Virus record (IMG/VR): IMGVR_UViG_3300028676_000005
Location: 165,430 to 229,429 of that record
Reading direction: 5' to 3' (one strand)
DNA length: 64,000 nucleotides
Below are positions 39,856 through 46,623 of the stretch, in pieces. Below the pieces are notes generated by a model that had not been told where the DNA came from, did no database searches, and worked only from the letters and a program-made list of their open reading frames with translations. Numbering within the stretch: position 1 is the first letter of the stretch; the number at the start of each line of letters is the position of its first letter. A program made the translations under genes and the position numbers.

Positions 39856-39885
39856 CCCCCTGCCTCCATAAAGGAGACAGGGAGG
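39856..39885 (-). terminator. Terminator-like hairpin
   Basis: CCCTGTCTCC-tttat-GGAGGCAGGG followed by GGTATTTT. Confidence 0.65.
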
Positions 39886-39892
39886 ACCTTAT

Positions 39893-40345
39893 TTACATTT
39901 TTACTTTGTTTGGATCAATACCAGCTTTCCTAAGTTCTGCCTCTTGTTCAGGCGAGAGCTTATTCTTGCTGCTTCTTTCGGCTTTGGCTCTGAGGTCCGC
40001 ATCCGTCTTTTCACGCTTGCTAAGCCCAGAAGAAACACCAGCCAAAAACTCTTCGATAATGCAGTTAGGTAACGTCAGGTAACTTTCAGGGGGGATTATT
40101 GTCCCCAGCTTATGATAACCGTAGTGTTCACTAACTTGATTCATGGACCATGGATGGAAGAAATCATGCTCTTCCGGGTACCAGGCCGCTGAGGAGTATG
40201 GTGTCTTTTTATCAGGGGTGTAAAGTTCAAAGTTAATATCAACTAATTCCTTTTCCCTGAGAATTAGAGTCTCTGGAAGAACTGACTCTAAAGAATGACC
40301 AAGCAATGCTTTGGTAATACCTTCATGCACTCTTCCAAAGGCCAC
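39893..40345 (-). CDS. Hypothetical protein; possibly expressed as -1 frameshift extension of upstream gene
   Basis: 150 aa from GTG with SD only 3 nt away; frame stays open upstream to 40483, spanning a T7 run. Confidence 0.7.
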   Translation of the reverse strand: MAFGRVHEGITKALLGHSLESVLPETLILREKELVDINFELYTPDKKTPYSSAAWYPEEHDFFHPWSMNQVSEHYGYHKLGTIIPPESYLTLPNCIIEEFLAGVSSGLSKREKTDADLRAKAERSSKNKLSPEQEAELRKAGIDPNKVKM

Positions 40346-40368
40346 ACGTCCTTTACTGTTTAGGCGGT

Positions 40369-42051
40369 TTATTCCGAGAGGGCTTTTACCCTTGCGTCGA
40401 GTCCGTCGGTCGCTTCCGCCATCAGCAGCAACTGGACGTGGGTAAAAAAACTCATGATTGGGTCGATAGGGGTGTACCCAAACTTACGATCCTTGATGTT
40501 TTCTGGATCTTCCAGATCTTCACGAGCCTTCTTACATTTAGGGCAGACAAAGTTGTTGATACCGCAGAACGACTTCGACAAGTACGGAGTCTTGTTGAAG
40601 ATGGCCGACGTAAGACGACTGTTGAACTGAGAGGAATCTTTGATAGCTTCCACCAGGCCCAGGTTGAAGTCGTCTTGGTCTTTGGCATTATCACGCGACA
40701 GAACGGTGTCCGGTTCGTCAGTGGCGGTATTGCCAACGGCAACAAACTTGTCAATCCAGTGAATGTATTCGGTGGCACCCAGGGAGGTATAGATCATATT
40801 GCGTTGGGTGTCGAATTCTTCTGGATCGAGAACTTTGGTACGCAGATCTTGCAACTCGCCAGATACACGAGCGCTGAAATAATCAAACGTCTGGAATGCG
40901 TTGGCCAACGACGGGGAACCCAGCTCGAAGTAAATCGAATCGTCGTCGTTAGACACACGGGTAGATTCCAGGCCAAACTTAGCACCTTTAATCAACGCCA
41001 TGGTTTCTTCGATAGTGTAGGTAACCTTGTGGTTAAACAGGTTGCCGTATGCCGCCGATTCTTCCGGGGTGTCATGCATGTCACGGTGATGAGCCAGACG
41101 TTCAGCGTCTACTAGCTCAAAACCTTCCCAGTCGCACTTAGGCGAAGCACACACCAGATGCATGTGAACACCTTTGTTGGTGTAAGCACGCAGCAGACCA
41201 ATGGTCAGGACGTCGATATCAGTCCAACGGATGACCGAACTCAGCTGGCGGAAATCACCAATGTTGCTTACGCTGGAGTAGGTGATACGTTTGGCGATAA
41301 AGTCCCAGATAACACGACCAGCAGCAATACGAGCCAAAGTGGCCGAGTTGTTGTTGACACGACGCACGTAACCTTTAATAGCGTTACGGATATCGTTGAT
41401 CAGGTTACCCATGTCCATTTTGCTAGGACGCAGGATAGACAGCTTAACGAAGGAGTTACGCAGCTCGATGTCGAACACCAAGCGCCCGTCTTCGGAGTTG
41501 ATCACGCGACGGCGCATGATATCCGAGTCCTTCATGTTCTTTACGTCACGCCCTGGCTTACGACCAGATACGTCAGGTGTGATTACGCCACCGCGATCGC
41601 AGAGGTTGGAAATGTGATCTTCTCGAATGGCACCGGATCGCATACGAAGATCATCAAGGAACTCCGAATAGAAGGCGACCATTTTGCCGGCACGTTCTTC
41701 AAGGGCATCAGGGGCAATTGAAGGATAGTGCTCAGCAGCAAAGCTTTGCCATTCTTCTTCTTTCTTGCGCAAGGCTGGGAGGTAATCATTATTGCGTTCA
41801 ACCATTTGACGGAGAGTGATCATCTCGATGTAGGGTTCCATCAAAGCGTTCGAATGCTTACGAGACTCTTTGCTGTTACCCAAGAAGATAGTCATGAAAC
41901 CATCTTCTTTCTCTTTATCGGTGAGTGGACGAATCACAACAGTTTCCGGCGGCACATGGTTAACCATGGGCGTGTTACCAGGAGTGTGCAACTCGTTATG
42001 TTTGGCGAAGGTCTTTTCGACCGGTACGCCCTGATTGGTTTCGTCAGTCAT
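40369..42051 (-). CDS. Putative tail/baseplate assembly chaperone (T4 gp26-like C-terminal region)
   Basis: D..VL.IGLL....G.....C...C and CPKC...FF motifs; start moved to ATG 42051. Confidence 0.55.
   Translation of the reverse strand: MTDETNQGVPVEKTFAKHNELHTPGNTPMVNHVPPETVVIRPLTDKEKEDGFMTIFLGNSKESRKHSNALMEPYIEMITLRQMVERNNDYLPALRKKEEEWQSFAAEHYPSIAPDALEERAGKMVAFYSEFLDDLRMRSGAIREDHISNLCDRGGVITPDVSGRKPGRDVKNMKDSDIMRRRVINSEDGRLVFDIELRNSFVKLSILRPSKMDMGNLINDIRNAIKGYVRRVNNNSATLARIAAGRVIWDFIAKRITYSSVSNIGDFRQLSSVIRWTDIDVLTIGLLRAYTNKGVHMHLVCASPKCDWEGFELVDAERLAHHRDMHDTPEESAAYGNLFNHKVTYTIEETMALIKGAKFGLESTRVSNDDDSIYFELGSPSLANAFQTFDYFSARVSGELQDLRTKVLDPEEFDTQRNMIYTSLGATEYIHWIDKFVAVGNTATDEPDTVLSRDNAKDQDDFNLGLVEAIKDSSQFNSRLTSAIFNKTPYLSKSFCGINNFVCPKCKKAREDLEDPENIKDRKFGYTPIDPIMSFFTHVQLLLMAEATDGLDARVKALSE
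40401..40450 (-). other. Candidate -1 programmed frameshift signal (T_TTT_TTT plus hairpin)
   Basis: AGT TTT TTT ACC at 40452-40441; -1 frame continuous with 39893-40345 ORF. Confidence 0.65.
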
Positions 42052-45796: not shown

Positions 45797-46195
45797 TTAA
45801 TCCTTACGCAAATCGATAATCAGCTGGATTCCAGTCAGGGTGGTATTGGTAATCTGGAACATCATACCCTTATAAGGAACCAGGGTATTAAAAGCGTCTT
45901 GCACGTACTTGTTTTGTTCAAACATTTTGAAAGCTGCCGACAGTTCTTTGGCCTCGCTTTCAATAAACTCGCTAATCTTCTTCGCTGTCGTGTAATGCGG
46001 CGGCGGAGTGATGTACAGTTGAATGAACGACTTCGATGGGTCCTCGAAAGTAACACCGGTCATAATGGAACGAATGCGCAGTTCCAACAGCTTCTGAACC
46101 AGGTGATAGTAACGACACTCTTCGATCCCGGGGGTAGGAACAGTAAGAGTAACTACTTCTTGGGCAACAGAAGGAGCAAAGGGAGTATGGCTCAT
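45797..46195 (-). CDS. Hypothetical protein
   Basis: 132 aa, ATGA overlap, GGAGG SD. Confidence 0.8.
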   Translation of the reverse strand: MSHTPFAPSVAQEVVTLTVPTPGIEECRYYHLVQKLLELRIRSIMTGVTFEDPSKSFIQLYITPPPHYTTAKKISEFIESEAKELSAAFKMFEQNKYVQDAFNTLVPYKGMMFQITNTTLTGIQLIIDLRKD

Positions 46196-46623
46196 ATCAG
46201 GGTACCTCCAATGAGTACTACAATGTTGTCTTTGTTTATTTTGGACAACACGCTGGTTATATTTAAAAGCAGATAAGCCGCGTCAATATCTGGCTGGTTA
46301 TCGGTAATCAGATCTTCGAAACGTTTACGCACTGAGGTGTGGTAATCAAGCCGATGGCCAATAGGGTCTTTAGAAAAGGAGCGGGCTTCTTCCTCACTAA
46401 GGAAATTAGCTGTTTCCACTTCACCGTCTTGGTCGTACAGAAGCTCGGTTAGAGCGCTATGATACCAACTATCACTTAACCCCTCCTCGGTGTTAATAAA
46501 GTCTGTCAGAAAGAGATCTAAGGAGCTTTGAATTGCTTTAACAACTATGTTGCTACAACTACCAATACCCTCTGATCGAAGTATCAGTGTTGCTGTACCA
46601 GGAACGGCTCGGTTATCCGCCAT
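46192..46623 (-). CDS. Hypothetical protein
   Basis: 143 aa, GAGG SD. Confidence 0.75.
   Translation of the reverse strand: MADNRAVPGTATLILRSEGIGSCSNIVVKAIQSSLDLFLTDFINTEEGLSDSWYHSALTELLYDQDGEVETANFLSEEEARSFSKDPIGHRLDYHTSVRKRFEDLITDNQPDIDAAYLLLNITSVLSKINKDNIVVLIGGTLI

Follow-up and report, generated by a model that had tools for sequence, protein, structure and literature searches.

A Run of T's in a Core Gene of phiKZ-Like Jumbo Phages as a Very Probable and Conserved Site of -1 Frameshifting

Introduction

Does a core gene of the phiKZ-like jumbo phages give rise to one protein or to two? The question is raised by a locus within a 64,000-nt stretch of the IMG/VR record IMGVR_UViG_3300028676_000005 (henceforth the window), to which no near-identical DNA was found amongst GenBank phages. 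A first-pass annotation of the sequence proposed that a gene of about 560 codons ends with a slippery run of T's, that ribosomes slipping there by -1 continue into the open reading frame downstream to produce a fusion of about 719 amino acids, that a hairpin follows the slip site, and that the pair is a tail-assembly chaperone system in the style of lambda G/GT, with an upstream protein resembling gp26 of phage T4, not described for this group of phages. I consider these proposals in turn.

Results

The Proposed Slip Site and Its Reading Frames

The upstream gene (gene A) lies on the minus strand (42051..40369), beginning with ATG at 42051 and encoding 560 amino acids. It is the ortholog of phiKZ gp77, EL gp47, 201phi2-1 gp136, and SPN3US gp39 and belongs to PHROG 4585, whose function is listed as unknown. 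Its AF2 model has a pLDDT of 81 and a pTM of 0.79. The gene contains, in the context AGT TTT TTT ACC, the heptamer T_TTT_TTT at 40450-40444 (minus strand), in the X_XXY_YYZ phase expected of a slippery site. The -1 frame is closed upstream by a TAA at 40486-40484 but is open from there through the heptamer (FFYPRPVAADGG...) to the TAA at 39895-39893, and no start codon lies in that frame between the upstream TAA and residue 36 of the extension. A shift after residue F536 would join 536 amino acids of A to the 183 codons of the extension (39893..40444, minus strand), giving a predicted fusion of 719 amino acids, whose junction would read ...PIDPIMSFFYPRPVAADGGSDR. The extension comprises a linker, a conserved domain of about 90 amino acids (HPWS...YG..KL...P..YL.LP), and a charged tail. 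The observation made in the first-pass annotation therefore holds, with two corrections, one of which is that gene A does not end at the heptamer but runs a further 24 codons (THVQLLLMAEATDGLDARVKALSE) to the TAA at 40371-40369.

The other correction concerns the hairpin at 40437-40401 (minus strand). It does appear in the minimum-energy fold (-23.3 kcal/mol), but it is no more stable than dinucleotide shuffles of the same sequence (z = -0.32), nor is it conserved, and so it is probably not a functional stimulator. More generally, RNAalifold found no consensus structure downstream of the site, minimum free energies had z-scores of about 0 in four clades, a search of Rfam returned no hit, and no SD-like stimulator was evident upstream. 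The efficiency of the shift may therefore be low, although a stimulator is not obligatory for -1 frameshifting, and lambda G/GT also works without one.

The portion of the extension that a gene caller would see as a separate gene (ORF B; 39893..40345, minus strand; 150 amino acids; PHROG 19747) starts with GTG at 40345, 24 nt after the stop of A, and is preceded by AAGGA with a spacing of only 1 nt. There is no terminator between A and B, but a strong terminator-like hairpin (39856..39884, minus strand), with a 12-bp stem and a T-rich tail, directly follows the stop of B, and A and B therefore lie on one transcript that ends there. Amongst 54 long ORFs of the window (20,397 codons, with 54 Phe-Phe dipeptides), the site in gene A is the only in-phase T_TTT_TTN, and it has the longest -1 extension.

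Conservation across the Phage Family

The first-pass annotation had named the comparison of orthologous loci as a test of its proposal, and that comparison takes the matter far beyond chance. B lies in the -1 frame of A, and that frame is open from upstream of the slip site, in all of 37 distinct phage or metagenome loci: 20 of 20 in a first set (the window, RisingSun, EL, Miami, FishSpeaker, five Vibrio phages, four Aeromonas phages, SXP01, pEt-SU, AH04, OBP, Kc263, and Yubaba), 8 of 8 metagenome relatives, the three phages phiKZ, 201phi2-1, and SPN3US, and a further six (LucasX, Noxifer, Ea35-70, FLC4-3B, BONAISHI, and CR5). The same is true of 28 of 28 additional IMG/VR loci, which are partly redundant. 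This is so even though A in the named phages is only 20-36% identical to that of the window. In phiKZ the predicted junction peptide is of the type ...IPIDMLSTFFYFGGLEVK....

The slip site T_TTT_TTN is present in phase in all but two loci, the exceptions having weaker sites: C_TTT_TTT in L058 (an IMG/VR locus) and G_TTT_TTC in Noxifer. The first Phe codon is always TTT, although TTT makes up only 28% of Phe codons in the rest of A (171 against 448). In the 28 loci tallied for this purpose, the preceding codon always ends in T while the residue it encodes varies (S, A, N, G, or T), as compared to a background of 37% for a T ending.

These results bear on the simplest alternative, that there is no recoding, B being an ordinary downstream gene begun at its own codon or by termination-reinitiation and the T-run conserved only because it encodes a conserved Phe-Phe. 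In favor of this view, the window does possess the GTG and the nearby AAGGA, every database annotates B separately, and Phe-Phe is conserved even in T4 gp26, which has no frameshift. However, the start of B is not conserved. The first possible start (ATG, GTG, or TTG, mostly without an SD) lies anywhere from residue 29 to residue 105 of the extension, and in D6 (one of the loci compared), pEt-SU, Yubaba, Kc263, and RisingSun it lies deep within the conserved domain. Peptide motifs of the -1 frame (FF[YRH]PxP and R..[SHN][PF]L, spanning the stop of A) are conserved upstream of any start, and the -1 relationship persists in every lineage despite variable spacers. Together with the codon choices at the site and the patterns of substitution described below, this strongly disfavors the alternative, which I consider very unlikely, and ORF B is probably not an independent gene, though in the clade of the window a GTG or ATG shortly after the stop of A could add some independent initiation.

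I also considered whether nature provides in-frame fusions of A and B. The relatives of 650-690 amino acids (SPN3US gp39 and that of phiEaH2) were candidates, but their extra length is N-terminal (PHROG 8054), and SPN3US has the frameshift as well. No in-frame fusion was found amongst about 120 cluster representatives, and so the two-product layout itself is kept. The region of Serratia phage PCH45 that was examined, with a view to transposon-essentiality, did not contain the homologue, and the "gp77" of Goslar in a 2026 preprint is an unrelated capsid decorator.

Selection in the Overlap and in the Extension

Comparison of all pairs of sequences gave dN/dS values that were saturated and uninformative, and selection was therefore measured in 30 close pairs. 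The linker after the stop of A has a pN/pS of 0.32 in the frame of B, against 1.41 and 1.01 in the other two frames, and over the extension pN/pS is 0.18-0.33 in this frame only. In the overlap (40369..40443, minus strand), where frame 0 encodes a 24-aa C-terminal helix of A and frame -1 the start of a basic, Gly/Pro-rich linker (YPRPV...RKGKSPLG), both peptides are conserved, and the synonymous rate falls 3- to 6-fold, to 0.08-0.16 as compared to 0.47-0.57 downstream. Within the overlap, AGCCCTCTC (40376..40384, minus strand) is nearly invariant at the nucleotide level in the clade comprising the window, EL, and RisingSun. It encodes ALS in frame 0 and SPL in frame -1, a signature of double constraint.

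It is conceivable that the shift serves mainly to tune the level of A, or to unfold the mRNA so that B can start, rather than to make a functional fusion. The overlapping part of the -1 peptide is indeed poorly constrained (pN/pS 1.3 in the frame of B, against 0.51 in that of A), as expected for a mere connector. But the connector is never interrupted by a stop in more than 50 loci, the B domain has no usable start of its own in many lineages, and that domain is under purifying selection (pN/pS 0.18) and so must be made, the fusion being the only consistent route. I regard a mainly regulatory role as a remote possibility.

Genomic Context and Possible Relatives of the Proteins

Gene A lies amongst polymerase genes (between RNA-polymerase and DNA-polymerase genes) rather than tail genes, its neighbors being an RNA polymerase beta-like subunit, a virion protein, DNA polymerase, and helicase. 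Searches of Pfam, NCBIfam, PDB sequences, and PDB folds with A and B gave nothing usable. A search with the model of A by Foldseek against BFVD placed T4-like baseplate hub assembly proteins amongst its structural neighbors (E 1e-3 to 5e-2, probability 0.96-1.0, TM relative to the target 0.46-0.56), a weak resemblance in which both sides are predicted models, no solved gp26 structure having been matched. The matches to the two models named as chaperones ("tape measure chaperone" and "tail assembly chaperone protein") had E values of 1.5 and 3.3.

The resemblance to T4 gp26 and gp51 (Pfam PF12322, T4_baseplate; NCBI name "gp26 family baseplate hub assembly chaperone") extends to a late CxxC followed by a nearly invariant Phe-Phe close to the C-terminus. 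In T4, gene 25 follows gene 26 in the -1 frame (with a TAATG overlap), and gene 26 also yields two products (26 and 26'). However, while T4 gp26 and gp51 hit PF12322 at 1e-64 and 4e-52, A of the window, 77 distant members of its family, phiKZ gp77, and SPN3US gp39 gave no Pfam or NCBIfam hit, and no sequence match to T4 gp26 was found. Profile-profile comparison by hhalign gave probabilities of 47% and 24% with single sequences and 5% and 1% with alignments, in inconsistent registers that disagree on which Cys pair aligns. A is moreover 2.5 times longer. T4 gene 26 does not itself shift into gene 25, since it has TTC TTT and a stop in the -1 frame, and the idea that B is a homologue of T4 gp25, suggested by the order of the T4 genes, was rejected (hhalign probability 0.7%).

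Discussion

A Probable Single Recoded Gene

I take gene A and "gene" B to be one recoded gene, a reading to which I would assign a probability of roughly 0.8. In this view, most ribosomes translate A in frame 0 and finish with the 24-residue helix, giving the product of 560 amino acids, while a fraction slip back one base as two Phe-tRNAs sit on U_UUU_UUU and continue in the -1 frame, replacing the helix with the basic linker, the globular domain of about 90 amino acids, and the charged tail, giving the product of 719 amino acids. The slip would set a fixed ratio of the short to the long isoform, and B would not, or not mainly, be initiated on its own. The analysis establishes the sequence signal, its conservation throughout the family, selection of a coding type in the -1 frame, and double constraint in the overlap, but it rests on sequence alone, so that production of the fusion protein, the ribosomal rather than transcriptional nature of the shift, its efficiency, and the need for both isoforms are inferred.

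Transcriptional slippage, in which the RNA polymerase of phage or host would add an extra U on the T-run, so that a fraction of the mRNAs carry A and B in one frame, would give the same two proteins, and sequence cannot distinguish it from a ribosomal shift. The invariant feature could be read as a homopolymer run, T7 in the clades of the window, EL, and phiKZ and T6 in those of OBP, Vibrio, Aeromonas, and SPN3US, and L058 keeps a run of T6 although position X is C. The absence of a detected stimulatory structure is consistent with this alternative, and these phages use their own unusual multisubunit RNA polymerases, whose slippage behavior is not known. On the other hand, runs of 5-7 are short for efficient slippage, known cases using 8-9 or more (PMC5009743), Noxifer keeps the arrangement with only T5, and the T at position X is kept by synonymous choice across five different residues, which a requirement for re-pairing in the P site explains directly. 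I consider transcriptional slippage unlikely.

Comparison with Known Frameshifts

The arrangement recalls that of lambda G/GT and the conserved frameshift of tail-assembly chaperones in tailed phages (Levin 1993; Xu, Hendrix, Duda 2004; cited in PMC5009743) in that a short product is accompanied by a C-terminally extended fusion made by a -1 shift near the 3' end (here predicted), the downstream ORF lacks a start of its own, no RNA stimulator is obligatory, and the arrangement is conserved across very divergent phages. The proteins also do not appear amongst virion proteins, insofar as 201phi2-1 gp136 and gp135 lack the annotation "identified using mass spectrometry" carried by gp138 and gp139, which is only indirect evidence. 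But the upstream protein of 560 amino acids compares with about 100-150 in the chaperones, it has no sequence match and no convincing fold match to chaperone families, the locus is not between tail-tube and tape-measure genes, and any binding to a tape measure would be by analogy alone. Furthermore, the homologue of phiKZ gp077 in phage Churi is listed amongst early-expressed proteins (PMC11849849), which fits a late tail chaperone poorly. The E/E' genes of P2, a contractile-tailed phage, reportedly also use a -1 shift on a U-run heptamer (T TTT TTG; Christie 2002), but the gene family, size, and genomic position all differ. Bacterial dnaX (tau/gamma) and the IS3-family transposases (PMC5009743) share the canonical -1 shift on X_XXY_YYZ that sets a fixed ratio of two isoforms with a common N-terminal body, but they use A_AAA_AAG with an upstream SD-like element and a downstream hairpin, whereas here the heptamer is a U-run and no conserved stimulator was found, and in dnaX the shifted product is the shorter one.

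The interpretation offered in the first-pass annotation is thus supported in part: the evidence favors a programmed -1 shift on the T-run yielding proteins of about 560 and 719 amino acids, and its novelty stands, in that no joined CDS appears in any of the 25+ GenBank records viewed and searches of the literature found no publication of this frameshift, but the hairpin as stimulator is not supported, the label of tail-assembly chaperone is unproven, and the hint of T4 gp26 has weak support only. The best lead as to cellular role, which is not established, is a non-virion assembly or scaffolding function distantly resembling that of the T4 gp26/gp51 baseplate-hub assembly proteins, in which case the extension would tether a second partner, as does the T part of lambda gpGT.

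A bolder possibility, which I consider unlikely, is that the gp77-family protein and its fusion are the missing pair of assembly chaperones for the contractile tail or baseplate hub of Chimalliviridae, a giant, distant relative of T4 gp26/gp51 that has adopted the strategy of lambda G/GT, with the -1 domain acting as the adaptor to a second structural partner. This would link two assembly systems so far regarded as separate, the T4 hub chaperones and the frameshifted tail chaperones. Alternatively, the fixed-ratio pair could act early, in a process specific to nucleus-forming phages.

Implications for phiKZ-Like Phages

The nucleus-forming phages related to phiKZ are amongst the most intensively studied of phages, yet this core gene appears to be mis-annotated in every record I examined. 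The long isoform is missing from all annotations, B is given arbitrary starts (phiKZ gp76.4 is annotated as only 80 amino acids), and up to about 240 nt of coding sequence is labelled intergenic, the "intergenic" stretch between gp77 and gp76.4 of phiKZ being 218 nt. Recognition of the recoding adds a protein isoform to the core proteome, corrects hundreds of genome annotations, and changes how knock-outs, transposon insertions, and proteomics of gp77 and its neighbor should be read. It also provides a clean natural U-run frameshift site, without an obvious stimulator, for the study of recoding in Pseudomonas, Erwinia, Vibrio, and other hosts, and it offers a clue to function, since a fixed ratio of two isoforms is typical of assembly chaperones.

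The Putative Slip Site and Its Surroundings

A 560-aa ORF on the minus strand (gene A, with ATG at 42051 and TAA at 40371-40369) reads ...ATC ATG AGT TTT TTT ACC CAC..., which places TTTTTTT (40450-40444) in the X_XXY_YYZ phase needed for tandem -1 slippage. The -1 frame is closed by a TAA at 40486-40484 and then stays open for 185 codons to the TAA at 39895-39893. The 150-aa ORF that a mechanical listing begins at a GTG (40345..39893, gene B) is the tail of this frame, and a -1 shift after F536 would give a protein of 536 + 183 = 719 aa. In these respects what the first-pass annotation saw holds up. Gene A, however, does not end at the heptamer, as had been stated there, but continues for 24 codons, which the AF2 model places in a long C-terminal helix.

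The GTG of B is preceded by AAGGA with 1 nt of spacing, too close for a normal ribosome-binding site. A strong hairpin resembling an intrinsic terminator (39884-39856, minus strand; 12-bp stem, 8 GC, T-rich tail) follows the stop of B directly, marking the end of the A/B transcription unit, and none lies between A and B. Phage LucasX carries an annotated Rho-independent terminator about 70 nt downstream of B's stop. The B-only part (39893-40368) is more AT-rich (GC 0.44) than gene A (40372-42051; 0.50) and uses codons such as AGA, AGG, ATA, and TTA that are rare in A.

Among 54 long ORFs of the window (20,397 codons, with 54 Phe-Phe dipeptides), this is the only in-phase T_TTT_TTN, and it also has the longest -1 extension. 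The second longest is found at 46267 (minus strand), where an in-phase T_TTA_AAT heptamer lies 25 codons before the stop of a 143-aa ORF (46623..46192) and the -1 frame runs 156 codons into the next ORF, of 132 aa (46195..45797; ATGA overlap). This second case may be due to chance, and only identical copies of it were found in IMG/VR.

Distribution of the Gene Pair

The window, part of an IMG/VR contig of 229 kb, has no close DNA relative in GenBank phages. A tblastn search finds A and B side by side in EL, RisingSun/Joad, Miami-like, FishSpeaker, and Vibrio, Aeromonas, Serratia, Edwardsiella, Kosakonia, and OBP-type jumbo phages, at 22-36% identity. A profile search adds a more distant half of the family, one member of which leads to phiKZ gp77, 201phi2-1 gp136 (annotated as "similar to phiKZ gp77 and EL gp47"), and SPN3US gp39. 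This is therefore a core gene of phiKZ-like (Chimalliviridae) phages.

Comparison of A/B Junctions

In order to assess whether the arrangement is conserved, I extracted the A/B junction from 19 GenBank phages plus the window, from 8 metagenome relatives at 41-89% identity, from phiKZ, 201phi2-1, and SPN3US, from 6 more phiKZ-type phages, and from 28 partly redundant IMG/VR loci. In every locus B lies in the -1 frame of A, and that frame is open from upstream of an in-phase T-run sited 33-90 nt before the stop of A. The site is T_TTT_TTT, T_TTT_TTC, or T_TTT_TTA everywhere except in two loci: an IMG/VR phage (locus L058, 3045-3060), which has CAC TTT TTT ACC (C_TTT_TTT), and Pseudomonas phage Noxifer (locus L066, 2530), which has GAG TTT TTC ATG (G_TTT_TTC). 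Both still have the -1 frame open into B, and they are natural variants useful for testing what the site needs.

The conservation is at the level of nucleotides, not only of protein. The first Phe codon is always TTT, although TTT supplies only 171 of 619 Phe codons elsewhere in these genes. In the 28 loci tallied for this purpose, the codon preceding it always ends in T, although it encodes S, A, N, G, or T, as compared to a background of 344 of 932 for a T ending. No in-frame fusion of A and B exists among about 120 cluster representatives; the longer relatives are extended at the N-terminus.

Evidence Bearing on Independent Initiation of B

The annotated or first possible start of B falls anywhere from residue 29 to residue 105 of the -1 extension, uses ATG, GTG, or TTG, and usually lacks an SD. 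In RisingSun, EL, D6, ZPAH34, pEt-SU, Kc263, and Yubaba it lies inside the conserved domain. In phiKZ (locus L030, from AF399011, 3646-4149), gp76.4 is annotated as an ORF of 80 aa, and the 218 nt following gp77 are labelled intergenic, but the gap is open throughout and gp76.4 is only the end of a single open -1 frame of 167 codons, starting at ACT TTT TTT ACT inside gp77. Peptide motifs in the -1 frame are conserved where no start codon exists: FF[YRH]PxP right after the slip and R..[S/H/N][P/F]L straddling the stop of A.

Selection was examined in 30 close pairs. In the 20 codons after the stop of A, pN/pS is 0.32 in the frame of B, as compared to 1.41 and 1.01 in the other two frames, and in the B domain it is 0.18, as compared to 1.62 and 2.03. 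Within the overlap the synonymous rate falls to 0.08-0.16, from 0.47-0.57 downstream, as expected for two superimposed reading frames. There, the frame of A is the better conserved of the two (pN/pS 0.51 against 1.30). The C-terminal helix of the short product therefore matters too, and the -1 peptide in the overlap is a loosely constrained connector.

Search for Stimulatory Elements

The hairpin proposed in the first-pass annotation does appear in the minimum-energy fold, but its z-score is -0.32. RNAalifold finds no consensus structure in the window/EL clade, per-sequence z-scores and alifold energies are unremarkable in the OBP-like, Vibrio, window/EL, and phiKZ-like clades, and Rfam has no match. 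The nearly invariant AGCCCTCTC at 40384-40376 is explained by double coding: ALS in frame 0 and SPL in frame -1. The signal is thus a bare U-run heptamer, as in lambda G/GT, where no stimulator is known to be needed. Slippage of the polymerase on the T-run would give the same protein and cannot be excluded. However, the runs are short (5-7 T), and the synonymously maintained T at position X is what re-pairing in the P site requires.

The Proteins

A has no match in Pfam, NCBIfam, or PDB sequences and belongs to PHROG 4585, of unknown function. Orthologues of A (RisingSun gp53, at locus L001, and the Joad, LAh10, and ZPAH34 records) are annotated in several records as "putative ZipA-like cell division protein" and in others as "putative baseplate protein" or "baseplate hub assembly protein". 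No Pfam or NCBIfam match supports the ZipA label. The AF2 model of A is confident (pLDDT 81, pTM 0.79) but matches nothing in the PDB. Against predicted viral structures, it recovers first jumbo-phage relatives and then T4-like "baseplate hub assembly protein" and "baseplate hub subunit" models, at E 1e-3 to 5e-2.

T4 gp26 and gp51 are paralogues, both belonging to Pfam PF12322, and NCBI names gp26 a "baseplate hub assembly chaperone". The gp26 family ends with CxxC...EFFxL (in T4 gp26 itself, ...EFFELL), which resembles the CPKC...SFF of A, the very Phe-Phe where the shift is proposed to occur. Profile-profile comparison, however, reaches only 1-47% probability, with inconsistent registers, and membership in that family is not established. 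In T4 (locus L033, from NC_000866, 2905-3929), gene 25 starts in the -1 frame relative to gene 26, a layout reminiscent of the A/B pair, but it merely overlaps gene 26 by TAATG. T4 has TTC TTT and a -1 stop, and so it has neither a slippery site nor a frameshift.

B matches PHROG 19747 (unknown function) and nothing else, and it is not gp25-like. The B domains of the window/EL and phiKZ supergroups align at 73% hhalign probability (E 3e-5), and the appended domain is therefore probably the same throughout the family.

Genomic Context and Interpretation

The genomic context argues against a classical tail module, since the neighbors are a virion RNA-polymerase subunit, a virion protein, DNA polymerase, and helicase. 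201phi2-1 gp136 and gp135 lack the mass-spectrometry note carried by the adjacent virion proteins, which is consistent with a non-structural role, and the homologue of phiKZ gp077 in phage Churi is listed among early-expressed proteins (PMC11849849). None of the GenBank records viewed annotates a joined CDS at this position. Full-text searches on frameshifting in jumbo phages (phiKZ and its gp77, SPN3US, and the Chimalliviridae in general) and on tail assembly chaperones, which did not extend to closed-access papers, returned nothing describing it, and the 2016 review of recoding mentions neither phiKZ nor baseplates.

The interpretation offered in the first-pass annotation, a tail-chaperone recoding system, is thus supported only in part. 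The assignment as a tail chaperone is a hypothesis with weak structural support and some evidence against it, and the hairpin finds no support as a stimulator, but the recoding itself is well supported. What the comparisons demonstrate is the frameshift as a conserved sequence feature; that the shift is ribosomal rather than transcriptional, and that both products are needed, is inferred from sequence. As a conserved sequence feature the frameshift is real, and it is almost certainly functional. Mechanistically it is a canonical -1 recoding event, in a gene family new to such events and belonging to the core of the phiKZ-like phages.
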